Positions 1 to 52,493 of a stretch of DNA of 64,000 nucleotides are shown piece after piece (the first letter of the stretch is position 1; each line of letters starts with the position of its first letter). This stretch comes from Saccostrea echinata (lineage: Eukaryota): contig NW_026889782.1 of the NCBI RefSeq assembly GCF_033153115.1, forward strand, positions 25,730,001-25,794,000, read 5' to 3'. A program made the translations under genes and the position numbers. The notes under the pieces are model-generated. The model had not been told where the DNA came from. It did no database searches and saw only the letters and a program-made list of their open reading frames with translations.

Positions 1-857
1 GTTTCTTGTCCTCCATTTGTCAAAGAAAACTCTGAAGCAGTCGATGTGAATACAGGTTGGCAAGGAAATGAAGAAGGTTGACTTAAATTTGGCAGGAGAC
101 TGAAACTCTCTCTTCTTCCAGGGGAACTTTGTATCTTTGATGTAGTGAGCAGATTACGTGTAGGTGGTTGGAATAACCCAGAATCCTGAGGACGGACTAA
201 AACTGAGTTTGGAGTGTTTCCTCTTTGTATGTACAAGGTACCTCCTCTTGGCCCTGAGTTAGATAAGTCAGTCTGCCGATCTACACTTATTACGCCCTGT
301 GAGTTTAATCTGAGAGTTAGTAACTTTTGAACTTGAATTGCTTCTACTGTACCTGAGTTCAGAGTTTGCTTTGTTATCAATGTGGATAGTAGTGGGTTTT
401 GAGCAATATTTTCACTAGTCTTTGTGTTTACAGTTTGATTTTCTATCTCTTCAGGAGTATCCATTGTATTCTGAATGTGAGTTGAAGAACTTTCATAAAT
501 ATTTGAGGATGTGAACGAATTTCTCATAACTGGGTCATTTGACACAGACGGAGGTAAACTTAGGGCTCCAGAAGATGCCAGTTTGAAAGAAGCACTGGAA
601 TTCACATTTGTCACTGTAGTATTCACTGCATTTGAATATCTTTCAACATTGAAAGAAGAACTGGAATTTGTCCCTGCAGTATTCACTCCATTTGAATAAC
701 TTTCAACAGGTTCTTGTCTTACTACTGTGGATGTATGTAAGAGGTTATCTTCCCATGAAAGCACCGATTCCTGGTGTATATGAGGGACTCTGTTTTCTGC
801 TTGCTGTGTGGATCCACGATTTTGTGAGTTGTTATCCATGGAGTATATTGGTTCTTC
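1..857 (-). CDS. Crypton-derived gene, large S/T/N/Q-rich exon running off the window edge (EEPIYSMDNNSQNRGS...)
   Basis: Acceptor tttttcaccccag|GAA in phase 0. My translation is stop-free for 285 codons to position 1. Absent from the ORF track because it has no stop inside the window. Confidence 0.8.
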
Positions 858-1157
858 CTGGGGTGAAAAATTAATTACATTTGTAAATTATTTTAATTAA
901 TACCAGTAAATATATTCAATACTTTTTTTTTTAATCTATCTATTGGGAATGGATGAAATGTTTGTCATCTGCTGGAAAAACAAGTTGAGAAAAAAAAATT
1001 ATGACAAGCTACACTATAATTAAAAACTGAGGAATAGAATGTCCAAAATTTAATCCAACACTCTATATACTGCTGATTAAAGAGTTCTAATTCTGTGGTA
1101 TTCTTATGCAGTAAGAGTAGTCTGCCCTTAGATCTTATAACTCAAGATTTTATACTA

Positions 1158-3108
1158 CAGTCCCTGAAATGTTCTACTTTCCCATTTTTCCGTTCGCTCA
1201 CCGTTCATTCACCGTTCGTTCAGCGTGCCTTCACCATTCGTTCACTGTTCGCTCTCTGTTCACAGTTTTGCATTCAGCATTCACCGTGCACTCATGTTCA
1301 CCTTGCGTTCAGCGTTCGCTCTCCGTTTGTTCACTTTGCGTTCACCTTGCGTTCAGCGTTCACTTGTCTAACTACACAAATGTACCCTGAAATTAGGGTG
1401 CAGTGTAGAGAGGGTCCTTAAATGCAGTTGCTTTTTTAAAATTGTTATTGACTACATTGCCATTAACCTCCAAAGGAGGTAAGCCATTATGGATCTGAGT
1501 GTTGTATATTTTATGTGCCATATTCCACCACTTTCTTGAGTCGTTACACTCGGCTATATTTTTTAATAGCTTTTTATAGTAGTCATCGCGAACATTATGT
1601 ACAGTGCATATACAGTGATTTCTTATTTTTCTAAATTCAGACCATGATGATCAGTTTGTTTAGCGACTGTTTGTAATCATTTCCGTCAACGGATAAGTGT
1701 TCAAATTGCATTATTAATCCAAGGAGGATCGGATTTTCTAATTGTCACTGTCTTATTAAGTATGTTATTTCTAGCATGCTTTATAATAGTTTCATTAAAT
1801 CTTTATTAAATCATTAAGTCGATGTCAGAATCAGACAATACATGTATTTCTTCCCAGTCGATTGAATTCAGGTTATCTCTATATGAATCGTAATCGCCTT
1901 GATTGAATAACCAAATTTCACATTTAAATGAGTGAGAGATTTGATTATATTGACTTATCAACGCATAGACAGGACAATGATAATGTACACTCTGGTCCAG
2001 GAAACAATCGCCAACATAAGCTTTTTCCAGAATATTACTATCACTAACTATAATAACATCCATAAGTGTAGAAGTTTTTTTGGTAAAATGGGTTGGTTCT
2101 TCAATTAGTTGGGTAATGTTGTACATAGTCATTATATTAATGAGATAATCAGATTGTTGGTCAGTAAGTTTGCATTGAAATCACATGTGATTATTATTTT
2201 ACTAATTTTAGTGTTATAAGCTAGGTCTATGGAGTACTCAATATCACTCCATATAGATAAAGGAGAGTTTGGGGGTCGATAAAAGGTTCCATACAGATTA
2301 GATTGGCCACCCATAAAAAGTTCCAACCAAACGCACTCAATCATGGTTGGTTCAAGGTCAATTCTGCATTTTGCGAAAATATTATCCTTGACATATACTG
2401 TCATGCCCCCATCAATTTTCGTCTTGCGATAACGACAAAATGGAGTTTGGAAGTTATGTATATCGATATCCGTGGTAATGTTATCTTTGTGAAGCCATGT
2501 TTCAGTAAATGAAAGGATGGTGTGGTTGTGAAGTTCTGCTTCAAGTATATGGATCTTGTGACTTAGACTTTGGACATTTAAATGAGCGAAGGTAAATCTA
2601 TGTGGGTCGAATGATGTGTTTGAAGTACTTGTTGATGAATTACATGAAGATAATGAACATGTGCCATTTGGTTTTAAGGTAGGCCCTGGATTCTCTTCAA
2701 TATCACCTGATAGGAGGAGAAGAAGTGAGTACAAAAATGTAAGAAGAGTCATAGATATATATATACATGAATTATGTAAAATAGGTGCACTGGTAATACT
2801 TATGGTAGAACAATTAAATGACAGAGATATAATCGTGCATAGTGTGTTTAGCCCCATGTTTGCAAATACATGTAAAAGTATGATAATATGTAGACAAGAC
2901 TTAATCAAACTTAATGATGATTTGGGAAAAATGGCAATGTGATAAAATAACCCCACACTAGCCTGGTAGCTAGAAATATCTACACACATTCACCAAGTTG
3001 CGTTCAGCGTTCACACATCATTCACTCACCTTTCGCTCAGTGTTCGTTCACCGTTCACTCAGCATTTGCTCACCGTTCAAGTGGGAAAGTAGAACGTTTC
3101 AGGGACTA
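1158..3108. mobile_element. Non-autonomous TIR DNA element (Academ-like termini) with internal (C)ACCGTTC/CGTTCA short repeats, enclosing a LINE fragment
   Basis: 27-bp TIR: (c/t)agtccctgaaa(t/c)gttctactttccca at 1158 and its reverse complement ending at 3108. Short-repeat blocks at 1190-1366 and 2996-3080. Confidence 0.7.
1610..2989 (-). mobile_element. CR1/L2-clade LINE ORF2 5' fragment (hydrophobic leader, 2A-like peptide, APE endonuclease), frameshifted and 3'-truncated
   Basis: ORFs 2132-2989 and 1806-2132 carry LLLLLSGDIEENPGP, HLNVQSL, SFTETWL, YRPP, (C)DFN, EPTH and HCPV. Downstream remnant PPWINN...KFRKIRN. Confidence 0.88.
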
Positions 3109-3658
3109 CATGTATTTAAATTTCAGTTTGTGCTATTACTGTATAGCATGTACAGTTTCAAAATTGTCATGACCTCAAAGACATGAAATATAAATGCTAA
3201 TATCACCAATATCAAAACCCTGCCTCACAAATTCAAAAGAGATACATACTCCTCTGAGTATTTTTGCAAAGTAGGTCAAAGTTCAAGGTCAAATAGATTT
3301 TAATGCTGCTTATTTTCGTGATATTTTATGTCAATCAGTTCAAATACTAAAAAGTATAAATTTGCCTCTTAAATATCATAATTATGCTACATATCAGCAC
3401 AATCATCTATTTGAAAAGTATGTCAAAGGTCAAGTTCAAAGGTTACGAGGTCTGTAACCATGGTATTTTACAGAAGCCAAATAGTCAAGCAATATATGTG
3501 CAAAATATCAATTCTATATCTTTTACAATTTTCCAGATCTAGGGTGTGACTGACGGACAGACAGACAGACGCCAGGTAAAGTGCATCCCTATGTGCTGCT
3601 CTGCTCTGCAGGCAACACAAAAAGATAAACTCTAACATCTTTACTCAACAATGTCCAA

Positions 3659-4571
3659 ACAAGAAGCCGAGGAGCCACATTGCTCACCTGAGCACTATGG
3701 CTAGGAAAAAGCAGAAATCAGTTCAGTCTTGAAAGGTTGAAAAGTTTAAATATAAAATTGGTTTGGGGGGGGGGGGGGGGGGGGCTGTTGCTGTTCTTAA
3801 AAAAAAGTTTTTTTAAAGATTCTTCCTATACATTCCTATTTAAAACTTTGATCGCCCACTGTGGCCCCACCCGATCCCTGGGGGTCATGATTTGGACAGA
3901 CTTGAATCTACACTACCTGCGGATGCTTCCATGTAAATATGACCAATCATGGCTTTGCTGTTCTTGAGAAGAAGATTTTTAAAGATTTTTCCTATATACT
4001 CCTATGTAAAACTTTGATCGCCCACTGTGGCCCCACCCGATCCCTGGGGGTCATGATTTGGACAGACTTGAATCTACACTACCTGCGGATGCTTCCATGT
4101 AAATATGACCAATCATGGCTTTGCTGTTCTTGAGAAGAAGATTTTTAAAGATTTTTCCTATATACTCCTATGTAAAACTTTGTTCGCCCATAGTGGCCCC
4201 ACCCGACCCCCGGGGGTCATGATTTGAACAAATTTGAATCTACACTACCTGATGATACTTCCACATAAGTTTCATATTTTCAAGCACAGTGATTCTTGAG
4301 AAGAAGATTTTTTAATGATGCCATTAATTTTTCACAAATTTTTAATTATCTCCCCTTGGAAGAAGGCGTGGCCCTTCATTTGGACAAACTTGAATCCCCT
4401 TTACCCAAGGATACTTTGTGGCAAGTTTGGTTGAAATGGGTGCACTGATTCTGGAGAAGAAGTCCAAAATGTGTAAAGTTTACAGACAGACAGACGGACT
4501 ACAGACAAAATGTGATCAGAAAAGCTCATTTGAGCGATCAGAAAAGCTCATTTGAGCCTTCGGTGAGCTAT
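3659..4571 (+). mobile_element. Helentron/HINE-type non-autonomous element with 166-bp (Cg170-like) tandem repeats
   Basis: 5' acaagaagcc...gctcacctgagc, 166-bp tandem units, ACAG/ACGG microsatellite, and 3' aaagctcatttgagcc...gagcta hairpin. Confidence 0.8.
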
Positions 4572-4684
4572 AAAAATATTTCATTGTTGTATAGATGGTC
4601 TTTTAAGTTGTAACTCATGCACAGAAGATAAACCCAACTATAAACCCAACTTATATGGGATTACAATTATATCTAGAGACTGAC

Positions 4685-4755
4685 CTCTTCACTCTCAAGG
4701 TCAAGGTCACTGTCACCACTTGAGTCTTCATCAACAGAATCAGCGGCTTCATCAA
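4685..4755 (-). CDS. Crypton-derived gene, acidic exon (VDEAADSVDEDSSGDSDLDLESEE)
   Basis: ttcttttgacag|TT acceptor and GAG|GTCAGT donor. Phase 1->0. Confidence 0.7.
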
Positions 4756-4837
4756 CTGTCAAAAGAAAACATTTTTGTAAAGCAGAGTCAAAACTTTGGC
4801 CAAAGAAGTGCAATACAGGGTTGTCCCTAAGATTTGA

Positions 4838-5878
4838 AACAAGAGGCCCACCTGAGCACAGTGGCCAGGGAAAAATCAATCCAGTACTGAAAAGCTTAAA
4901 TGCATAAGTGGTCCGGACCTACCCATAAATAGGGGAGGGGGGTTATGATCTGAATTAACTTGAATCTACAACTAAGGATGCTTACATATTTCTTTGACTT
5001 ACTGTGGCTTTTTTCCCTACAAGTTTGAACTTTCATTGTGGTCCCACCCTACCCCCGGGTCATGATTTGAACAAATCTGAATCTACATTACCTGACGATG
5101 CTTCCGTACAAATTTGACCAATCATGGCTTGGTTGTTATTGAGAGGAAGATTTTTCCTATATATTCCAATGTAAAACTTTGATCGTCCATTGTGGCCCCA
5201 CGCTACCCCTGGGGGTCATGATTTGAACAAACTTGAATCTACCCTCCATGAGGATGCTTCCATACAAATATAAACAATCATGGCTTTTTTATTCTTGAGA
5301 AGAAGATATTTAAAGATTTTTCTTATATATTCCTATGAAAAACTTTGATAACCATCTGGCCCCACCCTACCCCTGGGGTCATGATTTGAACAAACTTGAA
5401 TTAACACTACCTGAGGGCTTTGTTGTTCTTGAGAATATTTTTAAAGATTTTTCCTATATATTCCTATGTAAAATTTGATTGTCCATTGTGGCCCCACCCT
5501 ACCCCCGGGGGTCATGATTTTAACAATTTAAATCTACACTGCCTGAGGATGCTTCCATATTAATATGACCAATCATAGTTTTGTTGTTCTTGAGAAGAAG
5601 ATTTTTAAATATTTTTCCTGTATATTCCTACGTAAAACTTTGATCGCTTCTTGTGGCCCCAACCTATCCCCCGGGGTCATGATTTGAACAAACTTGAATC
5701 TACACTACCTGAGGATGCTTCCACATTAGTTTCATTTTTCCCGATCCAGTGGTTCTTGAGAAGAAGATTTTTAAAAGATGCCATTAATTTTTCACAAATT
5801 TTTAATTATCTCCCCTTGGAAGGTGTGGCCCTTCATTTGAACAAACATGAATCTTCTTCACCCAAGAATACTTTGTGG

Positions 5879-5916
<38 letters not shown>

Positions 5917-6024
5917 AAGTCTAAAATGTGAAAAGATTACAGACAGACAGATGGACAGACAGAAGGACGCTGGACAAAATGTGATCAGAAAAGCTCATTT
6001 GAGCCTTCAGCTCAGTTGAGCTAA
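4838..6024 (+). mobile_element. Second Helentron/HINE element with Cg170-like repeats
   Basis: Same architecture: aacaagaggccc...cacctgagc, about 5 diverged ~166-bp units, acagacag tract and gagccttcagctcagttgagcta end. Confidence 0.8.
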
Positions 6025-6229
6025 TAGAAGGGGAGATTTCAAAAGTAGAAGGGAATCATGGGATTCCTCCCCTAATGGGGAGTTTAGGAGGAATATCAAA
6101 ATAACTGGGGGATTACATCATTAAAGGCGTGAGAAATTCTAGCCCCTGGGTGTTAGGGACAACCCTGCAATATAAAAAAACGACAGGGACTTTTCAACAA
6201 TGAATGCCTCTTATAATTATTATTCATAC

Positions 6230-6457
6230 ATTGACCTTCTTTCAGTAGAGAAGGAGCAACCCCAGAGCCATCTTGGGAAACCTTCAGTTGATTACACTTC
6301 ATTTCTTTTATCACTGTAGGGTAAATACCCATTCCATCCTTCTCAAAAATGTTTTGTGAAGCAGTTTGAGTAGTTGCTGTCGGATGAATGAAAGATCTTT
6401 GTCCAATCAGAAAGTTCCTTTCAACACACTCTTGGTACACATTTGAATATGGCTGAC
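6230..6457 (-). CDS. Crypton-derived gene, candidate symmetric exon (GQPYSNVYQECVERNF...LLKEGQ)
   Basis: 228 nt, phase 1->1, open, unique sequence between repeats. Acceptor caacaag| is weak; donor T|GTATGA. Confidence 0.45.
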
Positions 6458-6848
6458 CTTGTTGGCACAGGTTAAGGACAAATATGTTTTAGTTTGGAAT
6501 GCACATGAGCTTTTAGTCATCCATGTGCTATTCGTGACTTGTGTTTGAAGACAGGAATATGTCTGAATATCAGACATTCATTTTTTGTATTAATACTGAA
6601 ATTTCTGGGCAGAGTTATATTGTTTTAATAGCAAGTAACAGAAATGTTCAAACTACAATTAATTTGATTAGCTGGCACATAGCATTTGGGGGGGGGGGGG
6701 GGGGGGGCTTTTTTCAAGACATAAGTTTTTATTATAGAAAATGTTCCTTGAAAGTCCAGGTGCACCCTCCCTACTTTTGGTTGCAGTATTGTCAAATAAG
6801 GGTAATACAGCTATATGTATGTATAAGGGTAATGTAGTGTTTAAGAAA

Positions 6849-9800
6849 AAACAAGAGGCCCAAGGGCTTTGAATCACTCTTCTGATAAACTGTACAACCT
6901 ATCACTTCTATTTGAAGCCTCTAAGTATCCTTTATATTTAGATAAAGCCTTGAAATTCAAAGGTAGGCCATCATGACCTACATTTTAGATGAAACACTTT
7001 GAGAACATAAGATGATTCTAAGCCAATTAGTTCCTAAGAGTATGTCATGGTGATCTACTTATCACTTGTCATTTTCTGAGGACCCAAGATGCATCAACTA
7101 AGTTTGATGATTCTAAGCCAATTAGTACCTAAAATATTTTTAAAATTATTACCATAAAATTTCAAAAGTAGGTCAAAGTGACCTACTTTTCAGATGACAT
7201 ACTTTGAGGACCGAAGATGCCTCAACTGACAAAGTTTGATGATTCTAAGCCAATTAGCACCTGATATATTTAAATAAAGCCATAAAATTTCAAAAATAGG
7301 CCAAAGTGAACTCCTTTTCAGTCAACTAACTCTGTGGACCCAAGATGCATCAACTGACAAAGTTTGGTGATTCTAAGCCAATTAGTACCTAAAAATATTT
7401 AAATAAAGCAATAAAATTTCAAAAGAAGGTCATAGTGACCTACATTTCAGTCAACTTACTCCGAGGACGTAAGACGCATCAACTGACAAAGTTTGATGAT
7501 TCTAATCCAATTAGTACCTGAAAAAATATTTCATAATAGCCATATAAATTGAAAAGTAGGTCAAAGTGACCTACTTTTAAGATGACCTACTCTGAGGACC
7601 CAAGATGCATCAACTGACAAAGTTTGATGATTCAAGGCCAATAAGTACCTGAAATATTTAATTAAAGCCATAAATTTTCAAATGTAGGTCACAGTGACCT
7701 ACCTTTCAGTCGAACTAGTTCGAAGACCCAAGATGCATCAACTGACAAAGTTTGATGATTCTAACCCAATTATTACCCAAAATATTTAATTATAGTCATA
7801 TAAATTAAAAAGTAGGTCATGGTGACCTACTCTGAGGACCCAAGATACATCAACTGACAAATTTTGATGATTCTAAGCCGCAGGTGTGTTAAGGAAGCAC
7901 TAAGATAATCTGACTTGACTAAATCAGTGATACCGTATGACGTCATAGTAGGCGAGATGACGTCAATTTTAGAACACAAGTTTTCTAAATACTGTTATTT
8001 AGAGATATAATTTAACTCCTGAATTTGAATAGAAACTTGCAAATATCAACAAAAATAAAATGTTTTTATTTTGTTATGCTGTATCTGTCACCTGAATTAA
8101 AAACTCCGACCGATGACGTCATATATGTTAACAAGTAACTTGAATATTGATCATGTTGTGTAACGAGAATTTGGCTAAGACGGCATGTAAAAAGATATGT
8201 AAAAGGGGGTTTAGAAGCAAATATCATGAATATTTTATGTGATTTATGTGAAGTTAAAGTTTGGTAAACAGGTATGCTAATTCATTTTCATTGATTATAT
8301 CTTCTATTGAATACAGTCAGCTATTTACGTATCCCGGCCGGCCTTTCCTTTGTCATTCGTGACAACAATAATGCAAAAGAACAACACTAAGCTGGATACT
8401 TCAAAACCTAATATTAACACATATCGAAAGCTTGTGTTCTATAAAACTTGGGAAGTGCTGCTAGAATCATGAGGTAAACTTGGTTTGAAGAAATATCTCG
8501 GGTTATATGTATAAAATGCAAAACATTGGGTAAGGTTTCGTGCGAATATAAGGAATAATTATTTTCTCGACCGGACAGTGGGATTCTAGCTGCAGCAGCA
8601 CTTTTTAGGCATAAGAGATGTTTTTCAACTATATTATTTACTAAAAGAAATTATCAAACCCCGGGGTATTGTTGTTCTGTTAACTTTTTTATTTAGGAAT
8701 ATTTTGCTATTAATAGCAGTCACGTGATGACGTTGCGGTGGTGCACTTCTTGGCCTCAGACACTTTGTTGTCTTTATGTAATAGTTAATAATAGTTTACG
8801 TTTTATCGGTGACTTTGATAAATTATCAAACTTAATTTTCTTAAAAGAGTCTAAAATTCCCGAGAAACGATTAATATGCTTCCTTAACATACCCACAGCC
8901 AAATGGTACCCTTACTATTTAAATATAGCCAAAAAATTTCAAAAGTTGGTCACGGTGACCTACTTTTCAGTTGACATTTTTTGAGGACCCAAGATGCATC
9001 ACCTTACAAAGTTTTATTATCATAGGCCTTAAAATGTCCAAATTATGCCTCTAAAATGCTTTGAAATCGAATGTCTGCAAAGTTAAAAAATTAGGTCACT
9101 GTGACCTACTTTTTACTAAATATGTTTTATGGCCCCAAAATGCATCATCTTACAAGATTTAATGATTCTAAACCTCTCAGTATTCGAATTAATGACCTTT
9201 ATTGTTTTGAAACAGATTAGCCATAAAATTCAAAAAGTAGGTCAAGGTAACCTACTTTTTAGTCAATGTACTCTGAGGACCCAAGATACATCAACTGACA
9301 AAGTTTGATGATCATAGGCCTTAAATTGTTCAAAATATGCCTGTAAATTATTTTGAAAAAGAATGGCTGCAAAATTTTAAAAAGTAGGCCACCGTGACCT
9401 ACTTTTGAGTCAACATGATATGAGGTCCTTAGATGCATCAACTGACAAGATTTGATGATCCTAGTCCTTATATTAAGCAAAATAACATTTTAATAAAATG
9501 TAATTTTTGGTCAACTTTGAAGTGACCTTGAGACCACACGCTTTACCCCATGGTGATTCCCGTGCAAATTTTAATCTACAACATATCCTCATCCTTTTGT
9601 GTAAGTTTGGTGATAATCTGCCCAGTGGTTCTTGAGAAGAAGATTTTTTAGCAACCAGTACTTTTGTTTCTATTTTCCTAATTATCTCCCCTTGTTTAAG
9701 GGTCACAACACTAGTTTTAGTACAAATCGGAGCCCTTGGGCCAAGGATACCTTGTGACAAATTTGACAATAATTGGCCAAGGGGTTCTTGAGTTATGGCC

Positions 9801-9880
9801 CATATTCTAAAAAGTTTATGCACACTGCACAAATGGCCATAACATTAGCTCTTTGAGCCTTTGGCTCAGAAGAGCTAAAA
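6849..9880 (+). mobile_element. Helentron-like element with ~120-145-bp satellite array (AAAAGTAGGTCAnnnTGACCTACTTTT core)
   Basis: 5' aacaagaggcccaagggc, tandem gaggacccaagatgcatcaactgacaaagtttgatgattctaagcc units, 3' ttagctctttgagcctttggctcagaagagctaaaa hairpin. Interrupted by a TIR element. Confidence 0.8.
7876..8900. mobile_element. Non-autonomous TIR element inserted in the satellite array
   Basis: agccgcaggtgtgttaaggaagca at left versus tgcttccttaacatacccacagcc at right. The satellite monomer resumes after it. Confidence 0.65.
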
Positions 9881-10030
9881 ATTGGAACTGAAGATGTTGG
9901 AAGTACAAACTGAACAACAGGTAATTTAAAGAAAGAAATGAAGTGTAATCAACTGTGGGAATCCGATGTACTAGTGCTGAGGTTTTAATATGAAGAACAA
10001 ATATATAAGAAAGTCTTATTCCACTTATAC

Positions 10031-10087
10031 CCTCTAGCTGCAGGGATATGTCATCTTGTTCTTCTGGCTCTCTTGGTGGAATCCCAT
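10031..10087 (-). CDS. Crypton-derived gene, exon 4 (DGIPPREPEEQDDISLQLE)
   Basis: cctttcag|AT acceptor and G|GTATAAG donor. Phase 1->1, open. Confidence 0.65.
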
Positions 10088-10367
10088 CTGAAAGGTTTAA
10101 AATTATATTTATTTTTTTTCTGATTGCTTTTTTTCATAAAAAAGACAATCGTAATGCCAGTTTCATTTTGTAGCTCTTTGGTAAACATGCATTTCAATTT
10201 TGTTACAAAACTGGTCATGGGAACATTTAATGAATTTTTAAGCTCACTTAACTTTTATTTCAAACATGATAGAAAGTCTTTGTTGCAGGAGTTTATTAAA
10301 GAATAGCTTAGAATGTAAACCTTGAAAAGTTACACAACAGAAGAAGTGCATTCTAGTCATTATCGTA

Positions 10368-11413
10368 CAGGGTTCGACACTAACCTAAGTCCGTTAGTCT
10401 CAGACTAATACATTTTCATTCGGACTAATAAAATCTGTGGCTAATTAGTCCGAACGGACCAATAAAAATTCCTGAAAAACAACATGAATAATTTAAAGAT
10501 GTCCGATTCTCCACAACTTTTACTGGAAAACCCCGCATTTATTTTTAGCTTTCTAGATTTTTGGCGGGGAGTTAGACAATTTCGAGTTTGCGCATATTTT
10601 TTTCAACTGATTGGTTTGAAGTAAAACATTTTAGCGATCATAATTAATATGACACATAAAAGAAAGATGTCAGACATTTTGGATGTAATGTAAAGAGAAA
10701 AAGAACTAGATCGGGAATACGATCGTACTCGTTGATCTAGATAGAACGTTCTATCGTTAAAATGATATTGTCCTACGGACCCGGTTTAACGGTAGAATTC
10801 GTTCCGTGTATTGGCAATGTTGCAAAATAAACACGGGCGATGACTCGTACTCTGTGCATTTTCTATGAACAATCCAGAGAGTTTCGAATGTCAACATGGC
10901 GTTAAATTTGAAGCGAGGAAAAAACGTTGAGAAAATTAGTTGAATTTTCGTATTTATATGGCTTATTTTTTAGGTTAAAAGACATAGATTATCTCAAAAA
11001 GGTTTGTTATGATTAATTTGGTAGTTATTTTCAGTGCAATTCCTTTTGTATTCTTCAAAATCATTTCGGAGTGGATCCACTCCAATTTGCTACATTGCAA
11101 GTATATGGAACGTAGGCCAATTCTAACTGTGGTGAGGGCTTGTCCCGAGACACAGTTAAATTATTCAAACTATCGTTGATCGCGAGGTTTTAACGAATCT
11201 GTGCTAGGAATAAGCCATTTCACGTAAATGCTTTGTTTATTTTAAAAAAGTATAAAAACATATATTGAAATGTTTATTTATAAATTAATGCTACAAAACG
11301 TTGATGTTTCTTTTTTTTTTTGACGGACTCATAAAATTGCATGCGGACTAGTAAAAGTAAAGAAGCACTAGTCCGGCAGGACTAAAACCTAAAAAAGTTA
11401 GTGTCGAACCCTG
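10368..11413. mobile_element. MITE with CAGGG termini and 5-bp TSD (hAT5-like)
   Basis: TIR cagggttcgacactaac / gttagtgtcgaaccctg. TCGTA duplicated at 10363-10367 and 11414-11418. Confidence 0.85.
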
Positions 11414-11454
11414 TCGTACCAGAGATAAGACAATTTGAGTTTGACAATTTGATT

Positions 11455-12103
11455 AAGGGCTGAAACGATTCATCAAAATATTGATACTGTTCAATATAAT
11501 AGCTCGATTCAATGTTCGATTCACTATCACGATTTTCAGTTTGATAGTTTTTTTTAAAATTGGGTTCATTAATTCCTTGAAATAGATCGGGTTTGACCTC
11601 ATTCTAATTGTTTGACACATATGTGAGGGAAAAATAGCGATGGAGAAATTAAAGTTTCAGAGCAGGCTGCCACTGCTAGTATTGACATAAAGAGAAGTGC
11701 TCTTTTAAGGGTACTTAGACACAGATTTGAACTTAATATTTTCTCAAATTTTCTGTATAATATCATATCTTGTATTTTGTTTCAATTAATTCGAGATAAA
11801 ATAAGATTCTTATTATGATTTAGTATGAAATGCTACAGCAACATACAAGTCATGAAATTGTACAGAAAATTGGAGAAAATATTAATATCAAGTCTGTGTC
11901 CAAGCACCTTTAATCTAGAAAAGCACAAATTGTGCTCTTTATAGTATCACCATCTTTTATTTGAAATTTTGAAATCTGAATAAACATTTTCTGAAACCTT
12001 TAAATTTGTTTCTTTTTTAAAATGTATCATTGAAAAAATTGAATTGTGAAACAAGTATTGTGATATGTGTCATATCATGGAGGAGACATATCGTTTAGCC
12101 CCA
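11455..12103. mobile_element. hAT-type MITE with 8-bp TSD, containing a nested TTAA element
   Basis: aagggctgaaacgat ... atcgtttagcccca, with TSD ATTTGATT on both sides. Confidence 0.7.
11709..11909. mobile_element. Kolobok-like hairpin MITE (TTAA TSD)
   Basis: TTAA|gggtacttagacacagatttga...tcaagtctgtgtccaagcacct|TTAA, with ~50-bp imperfect TIR. Confidence 0.7.
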
Positions 12104-12121
12104 ATTTGATTTATTGCTTAC

Positions 12122-12171
12122 CTGAATTCCTTTTTCTGTAGATGGAACCAAAGTTCTGTGCCTCACGTGTT
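12122..12171 (-). CDS. Crypton-derived gene, exon 3 (RTREAQNFGSIYRKRNS)
   Basis: tacttatag|A acceptor and CAG|GTAAGC donor. Phase 2->1, compatible with neighbours and open. Confidence 0.65.
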
Positions 12172-12472
12172 CTATAAGTATACAGATACATTTTATCTGA
12201 CATAGTCATTGAATAAAGAAGGAATTTTGTTAGAATTCATTAAATACAGTGACACAAAGGTGTAATCTTCGAATAAGAAGCAAGAATATTACGTAAAACT
12301 ATGTTGATTATTAGGCAATCTTAGGCAAACAGTTTGGTTCTTGGGTACAACAAAACACGTTACCCTTGAACACAGTTTATAAATGTATAGTACTAGTCGG
12401 TAAAACAACAATTAATTTAAGCCTCTTGCGTTAATTGATCAATACTAGTCAGTAAAACATAACCTCTAGCAT

Positions 12473-13708
12473 TACTGTAAATCACTTTTTATTTGCGTGA
12501 ACTTTATTTTTTGATTATGCGAGTCTGTCTGCTCGGGAAAATTTCATTCTCGCTTATATTTGTATTATAAAGGATTATATACAACAGAAACCACAGCTCG
12601 CGAATAAATACTATGAGGGTTGTCTGGTAAAATCATGGACAAGTTGTCTACACTGAGAAATAATCATTACTGCATTCTGAAATTTTCACAACTCTTTAGT
12701 ACATTATTCCTCAATAATATACATAGCAAATTTCAAATAGATATAAATGCCTTACAGCGCAGTCGCACAGATGATAATGTCAAAGTGTCTAAAGCAGAGT
12801 CACATTTCCACTTTGCTAAAAAATGTTGGATAAGTCCCACTTAAATTTAGCAATTTCATTGATGCACATACTTTAGTTTCCCTTTATTCCTCCATAAAAT
12901 GTCGAGGAACCAATCTCGCACACACATGGGACTTTCTGTAGATTTATTAGTAAGTTATGGACAGTATTCTCACTATTATTCATCTAAATCGTCAAACTTT
13001 GTTAACGGCCTACAGTGACAGCGTCTTTGGCTATTACCATAGCTGTTTGTCCGTACTATGTTTTGTTCTACCCGAGGACTTGATCAAAGAAGATTTCACT
13101 AAGAAAACTCCCATTTCAATTGTATTTTGTGATATTTTAATATTTCTTTTCTTCAGTATTCATTTAAAGTCTCTTAGGGCATCGTGGCTACATCTAAGTC
13201 AAACTGAACTGCTCTCCGGTGCACCGTAAGGTTACCAAACGTCACCTTTTTTCGTGTGTTGTATTAATCACTTTCCCTTTTCGAATACTAAGGAAACAGC
13301 CAATAAATAAGCATATGCCTTGAAATTTTCAAAAAGATAACATAATAGATAGTGGATTAAGAACTGAATAATTTTTACTTCATTCTTATCTATTTAATAC
13401 TTTAAATTTATTTCAAAATAGTACTCATGTATCCTAAAATGAAACCCTTGTTTTTTGATCCTGTGCCGTAGGACCGTACCTTGTGCACATTCAAGCTTAA
13501 TAAAATCTTTATTTTTGTCTTGATTTTATCAAAACATTAAAGATGCACTCAAATATGATAAATCAACATCTGCTGAAAATTTCAGCTTAGTGCGCCTATT
13601 ATTTTCTGAGAAAAAAGCTTTGTCCACGATTTTACCGGACAAACCTTGTAAGTAGCTAACTTGCAAAAATAAGATGTTGCGAAAATATAGTGAACTACAT
13701 GTACAGTA
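12473..13708. mobile_element. TA-flanked TACTGTA...TACAGTA non-autonomous element hosting a mariner MITE
   Basis: tactgtaaatcacttttt...cgcgaa motifs at left; gcgaaaatatagtgaa...tacagta at right. Confidence 0.55.
12614..13648. mobile_element. Tc1/mariner-type MITE (TA TSD)
   Basis: TA|tgagggttgtctggtaaaatcatggacaa ... ttgtccacgattttaccggacaaaccttg|TA. Confidence 0.8.
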
Positions 13709-13751
13709 ACTGATCAATAATTGAGTGTTAGTTCAGCATCTATCTACATAC

Positions 13752-14499
13752 CTTTCCAGAGGACATATGCCCTTGCTCAAACAATAAACTTCATGCACCT
13801 CAATCAGATGTTTGGCTATCTCACTGTCAGGAAGCCAGTCGAATTGTCCTATCAGCTGCTTCCAGGTATTAGCTGCTTCTCCAAACAAAATATTTCTATA
13901 CTCATTCTTGATAGGGGTATCTCCTTCATTATCACTATTTACACAAGAGTCTTGTTGACCAGGATATGGTGACCTGTTAGCTGATTGGTCAGTTTCACAG
14001 CCAATGATTGCTGATATTACAGAAGGCTCCTCTGACTGGTTGTCCAGTATTTCATTATCACTATTTACACAAGCGTCTTGGTGACCAGGTTCAGAAGGAG
14101 CTGCTGCATCATTTCTGAAAGTTTTGATCAGAGGGTTTTCACACAGAATATCTGGCACATCACAAATCTTGTTTTCTGTTACTGTAGTACCGTTAATTGA
14201 TTGGTCAGTTTCACAGCCAATGATTGCTGATATTACATAGGCCTCCTCTGGTTGGTTGTCCAGTATTTGGATGTTGGTGGTCCTTATATTGCTATTGCAA
14301 TATTTTTTGCTAAGATTGGCTTCTACACTCAAATTCATCATTAGTGCAGAAAATGATTTTTTTCCCAATGGCAAATCTTCATACCATATGGCATCAGAGT
14401 GTCTGCATACTTTTCTTGGTTGCTGCCAAAAGTAGGGGTTTTCTGGGTTCAATTTCATCAAATATTTCTTGAAAGATGCCACTGGGCACATGGGATCAC
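13752..14499 (-). CDS. Crypton-derived gene, coding exon 2 (C-terminal half of YR-like domain, internal duplication, helical module)
   Basis: Acceptor ttgatttcag|GT joins exon 1 in frame to give MYDRPGDPMCPVASFKKYLMKLNPENPYFWQQPR...WY...PLGK...NLSKKYCNSNIRTT. Phase-2 donor AG|GTATGT at 13752/13751. Confidence 0.85.
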
Positions 14500-14793
14500 C
14501 TGAAATCAAGGAAACATTATCATGTTACTAAAAATATGTTACTAAAAATAGAAACTTACCAAATCATAAAATTCTTCTTGTTCATGAACTCCACAGATAT
14601 ATTTTCTTAAACATCTCAAAAAGGTTCAGTTTAAGTTTACAGAGTGAACATTATCAATACATTTCTTGAAAATCACCCCTTATATGTTCACAGTGCGACC
14701 GTTAGGGCAAGTGTAGACACCTTTCAGTTTTAATTTAGACCGGGCTCAAAGTCTGAACAGTTTTAAATTGATTCAAGAACGTTTAATCTACTA

Positions 14794-15040
14794 GGCCAAC
14801 TTAAGAAAAATGTTTGGTTGCCCTCTCCTGACTCGGTCTGATAATATTGGGTCAGTAGGTAGGTAGGTAAGAAAATTATTTTTTGTCAGAAAATTTTAAT
14901 TTCAATGCTAATTTTTTATATTTTCTAGAGTACATATAAAAAATAGTTGCTTCCTGGTCGTTAAAAAACGTTTCCAGTCAGGTCATTTTTAGCCAGTCAG
15001 TCGGGAGAGGGCAACCGAACAATTTTTTTAAAGATGGCCC
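14794..15040. mobile_element. Zator-like MITE (GGCC termini) in intron 1 of the Crypton-derived gene
   Basis: ggccaacttaagaaaaatgtttggttgccctctcctgact versus agtcgggagagggcaaccgaacaatttttttaaagatggcc. Confidence 0.7.
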
Positions 15041-15488
15041 TATTCATCTGCTATATATACAGGAAATCAAGGTGATTTTTTGTTAAATTTTTGTTGCTAT
15101 CTGTGAGAACGTTGTTTGTGGCGTGATTTTTGCTAAGCATTATGGTACCACAGGTTACTGCAGAAAAAATTCATTTGAATCAATACGCCAAATCCAAATT
15201 TTCTTTCCGCCCAGGTGTTGCTTTAAGAGCTCACAGTGATGAGTGGCCCTTTGCGCCACTCACTATTACAGCAAATTACAAAATATGGGTAAAGTAAATT
15301 TTCAACAGCTTGCTGGATAGCTCTATAGGGTATACAATTTGGTCTAACAAGTATTACATTAGGTTAGAATCTAGGTCAAGAGGTTACTCAGGTGTATCAT
15401 TAGTTTTTACAAGTAAATGTGAGATATCAGTGTTTGAGATAATGAAGTTCAGCTGTATTATGAATCCTAGTGTTAAACCTGCACCCAC

Positions 15489-16149
15489 CAGGTCGATCAT
15501 ACATTCCGACTGGCTGCATGATTGTTTCCCTCCGTTTTTTATTCTTCTTTGTGTATCTCTCTCTAACGGTCACATACTCCCTCCCAGATGTGTCCCTGGA
15601 GAACGTGAAATCCTCTTTCCGTACTCGCCTCATGTGGTCAAGGCCTCTATCGCAGAAATAGTAAATAAACTCAAACATAGTCTTTTGCTGCAGCGTTCTT
15701 GGGGAATCTGTTGAGAACACTGTGTTATATAGTTTTGCTACATCATTAGGATGAATAGGAATTTTCTGTTTAGGAAACTCAACCTCCCTCTTGCCACCGG
15801 ATTTCATGAATACCTCCTTAAACGTTTTATTGGAAGTTGAATATTTTTCGCTACGAATAATATCTTCATTTCTTAGTTTCAGAAAATATTTCTGCAGACC
15901 GGAACGGATGTTCAGCACGGACGCCCTAGCATAATGTTGGCCGTTAGCTTTCTTCATTTCCATGTAGAAACTTGTCAACAACGCGTCCAGTTGTTCTGAC
16001 GAGTAAGTTGTCTCTACGCTCAGATGCAGGCCCTTTTCTAGAAGAAAGGCTCGGAATATTGAAAGTGTTGAGCTGATATGTCTTTTAGTTGGAGGCATGT
16101 AGTCATTGCTGTCTGCAATCAATACCTGTAACGTTTGATCACCAAACAT
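15489..16149 (-). CDS. Crypton-derived (DUF3504 / tyrosine-recombinase-like; KCTD1/ZMYM/QRICH1-type) gene, coding exon 1
   Basis: ORF MFGDQ...MYDRPG with Crypton-A-like motifs (LLTSFYMEMKKANGQHYARASVLNIRSGLQKYF; PRTLQQKTMFEFIYYFCDRG; SGREYV). In-frame TGA upstream at 16192-16194. Phase-1 donor G|GTGGGT at 15489/15488. Confidence 0.85.
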
Positions 16150-21728: not shown

Positions 21729-22161
21729 TCCCAACATATATTCATGTGTGAGAAATACCTGAAACTGTAAAGCTACAGTATCATCAGAGACTCCTATATA
21801 GTAACATTCCCATAAAAAATGACATGTTAATGTTTACTGTCTTAATGAATTCTGAAGCATTCAAATCTGAGTCAGGACTTGATTATTCAGATTAATGCTG
21901 TAATATACAATACACAATGTACAATATACAGCAAGACTACAAACCAAAGACTACAACACTACAATTTTGTTCAAGTGAATGTTGGGGGTCAAGGGCATTT
22001 TGTTCTTTTTCTCTAGTTAATCCTTTATCATATGTGTACAATACATTTTCTATATATTTTTCATATATTCCATACCTTATTCTTGATATTACATGTACAA
22101 GTCTATGTGTGCATCATCCTATATGATTTAAGTGAAATGTTGATATGTTTTCTCTCCTCAG

Positions 22162-22367
22162 AACCCATAGCTGATGGTAAGATCACCTTTAAGAAGCCGG
22201 TGGAGAGGAGCGGGGAGGAGGCAACAGAATTAAAATCATCAGCAAAGAAGAGGAGGGAAGAGAAAGGAGAGAAGAAGGAAGAGGAAGGAGAGAAGAAGTC
22301 AGGGAAGGCTGTCAAGAACTCAAGTCTGTTGTCATTTAACCAGGAAGATGAAGAGGATGCCACATGA
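22162..22367 (+). CDS. KIAA1143: KIAA1143 homolog, exon 3
   Basis: tctctcctcag|AA, then EPIADGKITFKKPV...VKNSSLLSFNQEDEEDAT* (conserved DGrIxf/yrKP and KNSSLLSF). Confidence 0.9.
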
Positions 22368-30342: not shown

Positions 30343-31990
30343 TAAAACCCAGATTGATTTTTTGATAACAATTCGTAGTCTTTTATATAATTGTACTTAT
30401 ACTTGAAAAGTATTCTCTCCATTACTTTACAGACAGAACTAGTAAAAGAAATGGGCCTATAATTATTAGTATTGTCGGGCTTCCTTTGTTTTTAAAGACT
30501 GGGGAAACATGTGCTTGTTTCCATATATAAGGTAGACATTTTTTACTGAGTGACATGTTGAAGAGTTTTGTTAATGGTTTATAAATAGAGAATCATGTTT
30601 CTTTTAGAATTCGTGGGGATAATCCGTCTGGCGGTTTAGAGGTATCTAAGATTTCTAATTGATCAAGAACGTCCTGATCGGTCATTTCAAAACCATCAAA
30701 GCAATTAATTGGTGGACCGGGTCCATGTACAGGAAGATCTGGCTCGGTGTTTATGTGTGAAATATGTACAAAATAAGTATTAAATTTTCTGCTTTATCAA
30801 TTGGTTGAATAAGTATTCTGCCATCACTGGATTTCAGAGGAGGAGGGGAGGTATTCTGTTTTTTAAGTCTTGAGACAGATTTAGCAATACACCACTATTT
30901 GCACGGGGGAATAGTCTTATCGATAAGTTGAGAGGCCAGTTTTACTTTATAAACATTTCGAGCTTTTCGTACTAATTTGACAACCTAGTTACGAGTTTCT
31001 CTAAATTTTTGCCAGTGATGAGGATTATCTGTTTGTTTAGCTTCATGGTGTATTCTCTTTCTTTTCCTCATTTTTCTACGAATTGTATTTGTAATAAAAG
31101 ATCTGTCAGAAGGTCGAACAGTAATGTCTTTGGTAGGGATATACTTGTCAACTAAGTTCATTAATTTTAAATCAAAATTATTATTCAATTCATTAATATT
31201 CTCACAATAGAACACATCCTCATCCCATTTAACTTGTTTTAAGTCGTCGTTCAAGCTTTGGTAATCAGCTAAATTATAGTTTCGTATGATATGTTTATAT
31301 GTCTTTATTTGTATGTACATTAAATGATAAATTAATTATAACTGGAGAATGAGAGCTGCATATGGGTGCATTAACATTGACCAAATCTATACAGGTTCCT
31401 GTATTTGAAGTGAAATTGGTTGGTTCAGTTACGACATTACTGATGTTCGGCCTTTGTAAAAGATGCTTAAAGATATTATTACCAGAGGCTAACATATTTA
31501 CACTAAAATCTCCGGTCAAAAAGATATTGACATTTCAGCATCTAAAGCTTTTTCCATGGTATTTCAAAACTTATTCCAATATTCAGAATTTGAATGAGGA
31601 GGTCTGTAGATTACTCCTACTAAAAACTTTTGTTTCTGAGTACAAATCTCAACCCAAAATACTTCAATATTAGGATCAATTATATCATTTCTCAAAATGT
31701 AAGTTAACTTATTGGATACATATAAAGGTACACCCCCTCCAAGTCTATTTTTGTCTTTTCTAATTGGAGCATGAAAACCATTTATAAAGATTTCTTCATT
31801 ACTAATATTGTCGTCTAAATGTGTCTCAGGTATTGCTATTATATCATTTTCTGTCAGCTCTGCACCAATAAGATCAATCTTTGACAACAAACTACAGACA
31901 TTGTTATGCACAATAGTGATATAAGAGAAGACTGATGGACCTGGATTTCTTTCGAAACATCCACATAGTAGCAGCAGTTTCATGACAACT
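30343..31990 (-). mobile_element. CR1-like LINE ORF2 fragment (degenerate 2A, APE, start of RT)
   Basis: LLLLCGCFERNPGP, HNNVCSL, ETHL, GGGV, YRPP, GDF, EPT, IDLV, HSPV, WQKFRETRN, then RPISFTSSVCKVMERILF...LLSKNQSGF. Multiple frameshifts. Confidence 0.88.
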
Positions 31991-41671: not shown

Positions 41672-42568
41672 CTGTTTCTTTTTCATTTTTTCTCATATTC
41701 GTGGGTTTTTCTTCTAACCTATATTACTACAAGTATAACTTTATGAATTTGAAAACAACTATTTGTTAAGCGCATCTAAAGTGTTTGTACAATATAGAAA
41801 TGAATCAAATACAATTTATGAATAAAATACAATAACTATACCAGTGTATACCAATAAACGCCTTAACTGTTTCCATTGGTACACATAAGATAAATGCAAG
41901 TTCTTAAAAATAATGTTGTGTGATATAATTTCTTATGTTTTTCCCATCCTCGGGTCCGTTGTACTGCCCTTGAATATTTCCATCGACGTCCAAGTCTTGA
42001 TCTTCGTCTGCAAGTGGCTCCCGGAATAAAATAGCAAGATTCTGAAGTACAGCACATGCTCCTGAAATCAAAACGTATGCGTTCACACAACAGGTACCTA
42101 AAAACATGCAAATAATTACTTGTGAATACTAAATGAACATGTTCCTAAGCCTATTAACTACATCTGTCTAAGCCTTGTACCTATGACTGTGCAGACCCTC
42201 TCCGGTGTCATCCGTATTTCAGCATGGAGGACGTGAAAACGCCTCTTCCACCAACCAAATGCACGCTCAATGGTCACCCTGGTCTTCGAATGGGCCGAGT
42301 TAAAGCGTTCCTGTGCTGGTGTCGATGGTCTCAGATACGGGGTCATAAGATAAGGTTTACATGCGTAACCGCTGTCACCAAGAACAACCCCATCCTTGAT
42401 CGAGTGAAACTTCTCTTCTATAGTTTGTCTTATTCCTGACATACGGAATATATGACTGTCATGTGTACTTCCGGGCCATCTAGCTACGATGTTGGAAAAT
42501 CTGCCTGAAAAATATGTTCTCGTTTTGAAGTAAAATATATCAGGAGTTGGGATTTCAGAATATCGAAG

Positions 42569-42573
<5 letters not shown>

Positions 42574-42620
<47 letters not shown>
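42574..42620. repeat. (TC)n microsatellite in transposase intron 2
   Basis: About 23 TC units. Confidence 0.95.
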
Positions 42621-42623
<3 letters not shown>

Positions 42624-52000: not shown

Positions 52001-52493
52001 TAGCCATAATTTTGGAAAAATTAGGAGTTTCCATTGACCACGCACGTGTGTTACTTTCCCAGTAGGATGCATAAGTTGGTTTTTTCACTACTCCCATGCT
52101 CAACACGATGCCCAAAAAAGCCAACATCTCATCTCGAGTTACAGGACACCAATCACGGAACCTGGAATGCGGACCTAAAATCATGGGGGGCCTGCTTCTC
52201 CTTGATATCTCCTGATCTGCGTATCGATTAGTCTCCCTCACAAGAATATCTACAATGTCGTGTTGTTCATACTGGAGAAATTTTGTGAAATACTCCAAAG
52301 CTGACATCCCAGGATAAAAACTGACGGGTCCTGTTTCCTCCCTGAAATCAGGGTCAGGCATGATAAAAGAGTTCGGATCCACTACATTAAACCACGGACC
52401 TCGAAATGTAGTAAATTCTTCATTATCTTCATCATCATCGGAATCAACTATGTCCGAATCTAGGTCAGTAGTTATGTCGGAATGGTGCGCCAT
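49056..52493 (-). CDS. piggyBac transposase (PGBD-like), 5 exons: 51856-52493, 51032-51230, 50084-50367, 49527-49708, 49056-49403; one frameshift near 49172 in the Cys-rich tail
   Basis: ETNRYA, MARNRFQAILQFLH, DPLHKI, CVDE, FKGR, WGIKLW, FDSFFTS, YNLTMGGVDLGDQ, WRKL, and RCAVC...WCEDCRVGPCVEGCFRKFH. GT-AG junctions in phase. Confidence 0.88.

Follow-up and report, generated by a model that had tools for sequence, protein, structure and literature searches.

Several host genes carry the DUF3504 domain of Crypton recombinases without its tyrosine nucleophile. Among these, ZMYM2/3/4-WOC, KCTD1 and KIAA1958 are expressed, evolve under purifying selection and act on chromatin (PMC3212892), and the domesticated DUF3504 genes of vertebrates have lost the second catalytic arginine, Arg II (Kojima & Jurka 2011, PMC3212892). 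The closest described system is QRICH1, a long, partly glutamine-rich, disordered nuclear protein in which a Crypton-derived two-domain fold lacking the catalytic set is located at the C terminus, behind a CARD. Its domestication is old (bilaterian/vertebrate), Arg II is lost, and, according to the account of Bianchi et al. 2025 given in PMC13538652, its DUF3504 domain has been placed in the Zincore coregulator complex (SEPHS1:QRICH1) on DNA (PDB 9hjt). Here, we describe a gene of the oyster Saccostrea echinata located at one end of a stretch of 64,000 nucleotides (contig C33:25,730,001-25,794,000, hereafter the window, including 146 N bases) within a 923-Mb assembly. We consider it likely that this is a Saccostrea-specific chimeric host gene, assembled from a Crypton recombinase, a host gene of the family that we call MNEYRN and the tail of SSRP1, and that its product is a non-catalytic nuclear chromatin/DNA factor.

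The oyster gene shares with QRICH1 a Crypton-derived two-domain fold without the catalytic set within a long, partly disordered protein, and QRICH1 is its best match by sequence and by Foldseek. It differs in that the domain is N-terminal, that Arg I, the catalytic Lys and Arg II are kept, that, in the searches made, the gene occurs in Saccostrea alone, and that the partners of the domain are the MNEYRN module and an SSRP1 high-mobility-group (HMG) box. With the ZMYM/WOC, KCTD1 and KIAA1958 genes it shares the absence of the Tyr nucleophile from a host DUF3504 gene, whereas it has neither MYM nor BTB domains, shows another pattern of lost residues and seems to have an independent origin, since a sister gene (par3, see below) is intact. 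CryptonA transposons would be the source of exons 1 and 2, with which they share domain order, motif spacing and the position of an intron (…G/D.xCPV…). Unlike the oyster gene, they keep the R-K-H-R-H-Y set and occur as near-identical dispersed units; the gene extends over 27 kb, has no copy nearly identical to it, carries host exons fused to the recombinase and has lost both His and the Tyr.

The gene lies on the minus strand and comprises nine coding exons (1260 codons over about 27 kb; Table 1). Exons 1 to 6, about 815 codons, are in the window, and exons 7 to 9 extend up to 10.8 kb to its left. An initial annotation of the window had proposed a multi-exon gene with GT-AG junctions and more than 810 open codons, and this proposal holds. 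Indeed, as read from the sequence, all junctions from exon 1 to exon 6 are bordered by AG and GT with compatible phases. The minus strand has open frames at 16191-15430 (254 codons), at 14524-13736 (263 codons) and from 887 to 807 nucleotides past the left edge (565 codons); with the local base composition, frames as long as these would arise by chance with P = 8e-9, 4e-9 and 9e-19, respectively.

The predicted joints were compared, over positions 9950-15949, with transcript contigs from four public runs, which come from two studies and carry two organism labels. In all four runs, the contigs are 97-99% identical to the window and omit exactly 15488-14500, 13751-12172 and 12121-10088, each bounded by GT..AG when read on the minus strand. 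The joint between exons 1 and 2 is found in three runs (X1, X3 and X4), and those between exons 2 and 3 and between exons 3 and 4 in all four, at the sites predicted from the sequence. Because the genome contains no intronless copy of the gene, the joined form should come from spliced RNA; the precise intron removal and the lack of such a copy argue that the runs can be taken as RNA. In addition, a public gene model, P0156 (1260 amino acids), maps onto all nine exons with 96-100% identity. Full-length comparisons used the database proteins P0156, P0002, P0157 and P0158, and the other searches were run exon by exon. The public collection thus already contains a model of this locus, which is undescribed rather than unannotated. 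The closest paralogue is publicly labeled "uncharacterized protein," and, in the literature collection searched, no title or abstract of the 19 papers that mention DUF3504 deals with a mollusc-specific Crypton-derived gene.

Exons 1 and 2 are predicted to encode a two-domain tyrosine-recombinase fold, with a helical core-binding domain followed by the catalytic domain, in agreement with the complete Crypton/DUF3504-like domain initially proposed. Taken singly, the exons score just under the curated thresholds: exon 1 against the Pfam QRICH1 domain (E = 7e-7, 29.7 bits, for a cut-off of 30.8), exon 2 against the end of DUF3504 (E = 6e-5, residues 3-55 of the exon, below the curated cut-off), and single exons against DUF3504 with 23.6-24.2 bits, under the gathering score. 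Full-length P0156 matches DUF3504 (PF12012) above the gathering score, with 39.9 bits for a cut-off of 29.7. PDB sequence searches with single exons gave no useful match, and a word-indexed search with exon 1 among proteins of 132-420 amino acids returned just one ENA fragment. The family profile matches QRICH1 (9hjt, E = 1.2e-10) and XerA (2.5e-5) in the PDB. The fold itself was modeled on the paralogue P0002 (70% identical) and not on the gene. In this AlphaFold2 model, the predicted local distance difference test (pLDDT) score exceeds 90 over residues ~30-310, including the helical QRICH1-type N-terminal domain. A Foldseek search with the model places QRICH1 first (E = 2.7e-9), followed by many Cre entries. 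VIA-align gives Cre (Z = 16.2 over 284 residues), QRICH1 (14.8), XerA (13.8) and lambda Int (~10), and the MrpR/YopR and SroF phage repressors are found among its fold matches with Z = 8-10.

The catalytic positions were read by alignment with family members that keep R-K-H-R-H-Y. As first noted, the first Arg is kept and both His and the Tyr nucleophile are gone: the R-H-R-Y tetrad is incomplete, with Arg I, the Lys and Arg II present and His II replaced by Ser. In the P0002 model, no ordered helix occupies the position of the Tyr helix, and residues 328-387 have a pLDDT below 50. Exon 2 further contains direct repeats of 77 nucleotides (91% identical) and 39 nucleotides (95% identical), by which the degenerate box-II/Tyr segment is duplicated. 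An S. cucullata relative carries three copies of this segment, and the internal duplication in exon 2 appears to be recent.

The genome contains at least 130 relatives of exon 1. The initial annotation had pointed out that many dispersed near-identical copies would mean a transposable element (TE); we found no near-identical copy of the gene, the best other exon 1 copy being 70% identical. The possibility that the gene is still a TE was therefore rejected on copy number and on its fusion to host exons. Its closest relatives lie on the same contig: par1 (17.14 Mb, 70%), par2 (33.26 Mb, 68%) and par3 (17.07 Mb, 47-49%). The nearest multi-copy or intronless Crypton copies are 33-41% identical to the recombinase domain. 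Discrete Crypton units of 1.9-2.4 kb with sharp borders and a complete active site are 98.3-99.9% identical between chromosomes, and by this measure such units appear to be live or recently live. They correspond to loci L028/L029, L026/L027, L018/L019 and L020/L021, on various contigs, and at least the L028 family has an intron. Several intact Crypton copies, including 99.9%-identical ones, carry an intron at the position of intron 1 of the gene, which indicates that intron 1 came with the transposon. Reading intron 1 as a sign of domestication was rejected on the same ground, as live Crypton copies share it.

Outside Saccostrea, the searches of protein collections turned up no relative nearer than generic DUF3504 proteins. 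When 1.84 billion representative proteins were scanned with exon 2, 1531 matches were obtained, three of which were below 1e-30 (par1, par3 and an S. cucullata protein). In a word search with par1, only Saccostrea proteins were below 1e-10. Generic DUF3504 proteins from scallop, mussel, echinoderms and amphioxus came next. In a tree of the recombinase region built by maximum likelihood (25 rows, with no vertebrate sequences among them), the gene, par1, par2 and two S. cucullata genes are united in one clade (100/100) with a long stem. As to the relatives that the initial annotation had proposed to look for in other oysters, the tree joins the gene to the two S. cucullata genes (100/95). A wider clade adds par3 as sister (95/94), and the five-gene clade lies nested within mollusc genes whose catalytic sets are intact.

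All five clade members have the Ser and the Cys and have lost the Tyr; the S. echinata copies still possess Arg I, Lys and Arg II, and par3 has the full R-K-H-R-H-Y set. Since the five dead genes share their losses and par3 is intact, the active site died once, in the Saccostrea lineage after the split from par3, and this loss would be recent and independent of those in ZMYM, QRICH1 and KCTD1. An independent mollusc domestication had been raised as a possibility at the outset; an independent and recent Crypton domestication with surviving intermediates, distinct from the vertebrate ones, is now largely supported. The sister gene par3 (LOC133198711; C33:17,070,000-17,078,400; loci L015 and L004) is a fusion of recombinase, MNEYRN module, acidic and S/T-rich regions, and by its sequence it is a candidate for a host-employed, still competent recombinase. 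Its isoform X3 begins in a different upstream recombinase unit, which is spliced to par3 exon 2. Locus L006 (C33:33,238,259-33,238,707), 21 kb from par2, is a decayed copy of exon 1 (59% identical) with at least three stops and seems to be a dead member of the same small clade.

The initial annotation had described the recombinase-like domain as N-terminal and followed by acidic and long S/T/Q-rich segments, with no MYM or BTB domain visible. This order stands, as does the absence of MYM and BTB; what has to be added is that these segments are exons of a host gene family that existed beforehand. The genome contains eight occurrences of the final 52 codons of exon 2 (…NEYRNILFGEAANTWKQLIGQFDWLPDSEIAKHLIEVHEVYCLSKGICPLE). 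At three of the eight, the module is a first coding exon with its own ATG (MNEYRN/MNRYRN), with stops upstream and no recombinase within 4 kb, and these recombinase-less first exons have a donor that coincides in place and phase with that of exon 2. Furthermore, M-NEYRN forms the beginning of annotated recombinase-less proteins in S. cucullata, S. echinata and Ostrea edulis, and the recombinase-less MNEYRN proteins continue with an acidic stretch homologous to exons 4-5. The residue preceding NEYRN is Met in par2 and par3, Lys in the gene and Arg in par1. Because the module is an ATG-started first exon elsewhere and the Met is kept in par2 and par3, the recombinase frame appears to have been fused to the start of a host gene. 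In the transcript contigs, the Lys codon at 13907-13909 carries a T>C difference that yields Glu.

The pattern H-x4-H-x3-C-x(3-5)-C of the module is invariant, and its structure, predicted for the module alone, consists of three helices (mean pLDDT 67). This fold had no Foldseek match and a best VIA-align Z of 4.1, and a Pfam scan of exon 6 and the module found no family match. A second, independent MNEYRN-Crypton fusion has arisen in a different recombinase lineage (L018/L031 type) and in the opposite order, with the module N-terminal and the recombinase C-terminal (L036 at C33:5,022,085-5,022,231, with a recombinase exon near C33:4,989,010; proteins P0181, P0183 and P0184). In the S. echinata protein P0181 of this second fusion, the catalytic motifs are likewise degenerate (PQCLR, NLCNE). 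Fusions between MNEYRN genes and Crypton recombinases have thus arisen at least two times, and both orders are represented.

Apart from the gene itself, just two loci of the genome, par1 (73% identical) and par2 (51%), carry exon 6 at full length, and the exon contains coding tandem repeats with 45- and 78-nucleotide periods. One minisatellite (L017:835-1464, window ~-666 to -37) has about six copies, which code for GGQQxSPASGVTxIx repeats; the three paralogues differ in their repeat units and in how long the repeat region is. The donor of exon 6, 804 nucleotides left of the window, reads GAA AAG/GTATAG, so that reading through it would add one Val and then a stop. The RefSeq model of par1 ends in this way, and judging from the sequence an HMG-less isoform may be made by exon 6 read-through.

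Reading on to the left of the window, as the initial annotation had suggested, revealed exons 7 to 9, which end in an SSRP1-type HMG box. In P0156, this box matches PF00505 over amino acids 1101-1167 (E = 6.9e-16, 58.9 bits for a cut-off of 25.4). In the PDB it comes closest to the HMGB1 B box, SSRP1 and HMG-D and matches SOX/SRY far less well, so by sequence it would belong to the non-sequence-specific HMGB/SSRP1 class. The HMG exon is found elsewhere in the genome in par1, in par2 and at C30:24.22 Mb, and par3 has no HMG exon. Upstream exons of the C30 locus carry POB3_N, SSrecog, PH and Rtt106-like domains, which identifies it as the true SSRP1 gene, encoding a subunit of FACT. Exons 7, 8 and 9 match the last three SSRP1 exons piece by piece, in the same three pieces, with 56-64% amino-acid identity. 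The histone-chaperone domains of SSRP1 are absent from the oyster gene, the Pfam scan of P0156 finding no POB3_N, SSrecog, PH or Rtt106-like domain; the 3' end alone, corresponding to the last three exons, thus seems to have been copied. That scan matched only the DUF3504, QRICH1-N and HMG-box models, with no MYM, BTB or CARD.

Selection was assessed as the ratio of non-synonymous to synonymous substitution rates (dN/dS; Nei-Gojobori) between S. echinata paralogues, exon by exon. For exons 1, 2 and 6, respectively, the ratios are 0.53, 0.56 and 0.56 between the gene and par1, 0.21, 0.38 and 0.69 between the gene and par2, and 0.20, 0.33 and 0.76 between par1 and par2. All pairwise values (0.20-0.76) are significantly below 1 (z = 2.1-7.9), as a functional host gene had been expected to show, and the constraint on the gene is real but moderate. 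The 1260-codon frame is open in three paralogues that differ by a dS of 0.25-0.9, and its maintenance in such diverged copies argues for selection.

We propose that exons 1 and 2 derive from a CryptonA-type tyrosine recombinase, taken up together with the transposon's own intron, and that the initiator Met of a MNEYRN-family host gene became joined to this recombinase without a shift of frame. The host part would have provided the helical H..H..C..C module, the acidic stretch and the long disordered S/T/Q-rich region, and a partial duplication of SSRP1, covering its last three exons, would have added the HMG box and the basic tail. Since par3 is a fusion that keeps all catalytic residues, fusion preceded both the loss of the active site and the gain of the HMG box. 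His II, His III and Tyr would have been lost and the HMG tail gained after fusion, and subsequent duplication would have produced the three S. echinata paralogues, the gene's lineage splitting off before S. echinata and S. cucullata separated.

As for function, the dead fold may act as a DNA- and/or protein-docking domain, because both Arg and the Lys that grip the DNA phosphate are still present; the DUF3504 domain of QRICH1 in Zincore offers a precedent. The SSRP1-type HMG box would add non-sequence-specific binding to bent DNA or nucleosomes, and the acidic, low-complexity middle could link the two ends or recruit partners. A nuclear, non-catalytic DNA/chromatin factor is the most likely product, as we infer from the sequence and from analogy with the described systems. 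The phage repressors MrpR/YopR of SPbeta and SroF of phi3T likewise employ a tyrosine-recombinase fold as a non-recombining DNA-binding regulator; unlike the oyster protein, they are bacterial-virus proteins, related at the fold level only, and have no fusion partners.

Several points weigh against the reading as a chimeric host factor. The dN/dS between the gene and its closest paralogue is about 0.5 in every exon compared, and the window differs from the transcript contigs by 12 non-synonymous and 6 synonymous changes. The support for the fold comes from a model of the paralogue P0002 rather than of this gene, and the box-II segment is duplicated and predicted to be disordered. Moreover, the RNA nature of the runs is a guess, read support covers exons 1 to 4, the joints from exon 4 to exon 9 being drawn from the sequence and from model P0156, and the function is deduced rather than observed.

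To our knowledge, the domesticated Cryptons described so far (WOC/ZMYM, QRICH1, KCTD1 and KIAA1958) are ancient events whose intermediates have been lost. Here, one oyster genus would hold the source transposons, a fused intact intermediate and dead HMG-box end products together. These coexisting stages give an order of steps, with fusion to host exons first and active-site loss and domain accretion later. With a dead recombinase at the N terminus, followed by a host module and an HMG box from SSRP1, the gene would have a new DUF3504 architecture and would illustrate clearly how TE capture and exon shuffling can build a gene. It also offers material for testing the role of a dead recombinase fold in chromatin, an issue that the structure of QRICH1 in Zincore has recently raised.

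An alternative that we hold to be unlikely is that the dead recombinase proteins antagonize or target Cryptons or the intact sister, the family evolving in an arms race. Tyrosine recombinases work as tetramers, and a DNA-binding subunit without Tyr could poison synapses in a dominant-negative manner, or could bring chromatin factors to Crypton-like sites. Possible targets exist, as the genome houses live Crypton families and the intact par3 with the same fusion, and the Arg I, Lys and Arg II kept in the S. echinata copies, the long stem branch, the tandem duplications and the phage repressors with a dead recombinase fold among the fold matches would all suit an antagonist. However, identities of 33-41% with the nearest multi-copy or intronless Cryptons and of 48-53% with par3 are low for mixed tetramers, and the C-terminal segment, which subunits normally exchange, is degenerate and duplicated. 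Binding to Crypton ends is a supposition, and the dN/dS of about 0.5, which might reflect an arms race, also fits simple relaxed constraint. A related scheme starts from the stepwise series within one genus, from live intron-bearing Cryptons through the fused intact par3 to the dead copies with HMG. It supposes, just as improbably in our judgment, that par3 or live Cryptons are acted upon by the dead copies, as non-cleaving subunits or as targeting factors. Within it, the repeated fusion of MNEYRN genes and Cryptons, at least two and in both orders, may mark a functional partnership, for example a host system that controls or uses Crypton recombination.

It is quite unlikely, in our view, that the gene is a young transcribed chimera without selected function, a side effect of TE insertion and segmental duplication on its way to becoming a pseudogene. 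The ratios of 0.5-0.76 in several comparisons, the excess of non-synonymous over synonymous differences from the transcript contigs, the decayed copy with three stops near par2 and the largely low-complexity, repetitive protein would be expected of such a chimera. Against this, the 1260-codon frame stays open over nine exons in three paralogues at a dS of 0.25-0.9, every pairwise dN/dS is significantly below 1 and falls to 0.20 for exon 1, the splice sites are kept and used, and the architecture is conserved in a second species. Descent as an offshoot or orthologue of an ancient domestication (WOC/ZMYM, QRICH1, KCTD1 or KIAA1958) is very improbable, for although the QRICH1 DUF3504 region is the best PDB match by sequence and fold and the Pfam QRICH1 and DUF3504 models match, the clear orthology to KCTD1-like or ZMYM genes that the initial annotation had considered is not seen, P0156 having no MYM, BTB or CARD and an N-terminal recombinase, the clade keeps the Arg II that vertebrate genes have lost (PMC3212892), only generic DUF3504 proteins were found outside Saccostrea, and the clade's place among intact mollusc genes including par3 would imply an implausible regain of a complete active site.

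Table 1. Position of the gene's exons, motifs and neighbors, numbered along the window; a slash marks an exon border, and domain contents are as predicted from sequence
Feature	Position	Strand	Description
Coding exon 1	15489..16149	-	ATG at 16149; 220 codons + 1 nt; donor CCTG/GTGGGT; core-binding-like ("QRICH1-type") N-terminal domain and first half of recombinase catalytic fold
QRICH1-type N-terminal domain	15808..16005	-	aa 49-114; Pfam PF25561 match
Arg I	15646..15648	-	FCD-R-G, kept
Catalytic Lys of beta-hairpin	15547..15549	-	YT-K-KN, kept
Coding exon 2	13752..14499	-	748 nt; acceptor tttcag/GTGATCCC, donor GGAAAG/GTATGT; second half of fold with dead motifs, duplicated degenerate segment, linker, MNEYRN module
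HxxR box	14282..14293	-	S-N-I-R (CN-S-NI-R): His II replaced by Ser, Arg II kept
GH...Y box	14186..14215	-	GCETDQSINGT: His III replaced by Cys (IIG-C-E); Tyr gone in a 2-residue deletion (SING-T)
Internal duplication of degenerate box-II/Tyr segment	13925..14268	-	ILDNQxEE..ISAIIGCETDQS and GxQDxCVNSDNE, two copies each
MNEYRN module	13754..13909	-	From first coding exon of a recombinase-less host gene, in-frame fusion; Lys codon 13907-13909 at initiator Met position
Coding exon 3	12122..12171	-	50 nt; joints 12171 to 13752 and 10087 to 12122 in 4/4 runs
Coding exon 4	10031..10087	-	57 nt, acidic; acceptor joint in 4/4 runs; donor GAGG/GTATAA from sequence and P0156
Coding exon 5	4685..4755	-	71 nt; VDEAADSVDEDSSGDSDLDLESEE, acidic/Ser-rich; AG and GT borders, phases compatible; in P0156
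Coding exon 6, in-window part	1..857	-	Whole exon 857 to -804 (~554 codons); S/T/Q/G-rich, predicted disordered
Exons 7, 8, 9	1043-1231, 6344-6496, 10634-10825 nt left of window	-	Mapped from P0156; SSRP1-type HMG box and basic tail
Window neighbors	22032-22367 (+), 51780-52493 (-), 42158-42622 (-), 31564-31983 (-), 2135-2989 (-)		

The introns had been described as full of TE remains, and such debris is indeed found: one open reading frame has a weak, sub-threshold match to a long interspersed nuclear element (LINE)-type endonuclease, and elsewhere there are repeat matches in several frames. The neighbors listed in Table 1 comprise a DUF4604/KIAA1143-like exon, with a weak Pfam match, a piggyBac-like DDE_Tnp_1_7 fragment and a Harbinger-type DDE_Tnp_4 fragment. 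Two further neighboring fragments have weak, sub-threshold LINE-type endonuclease matches, one of which (2135-2989, minus strand) lies inside intron 5.

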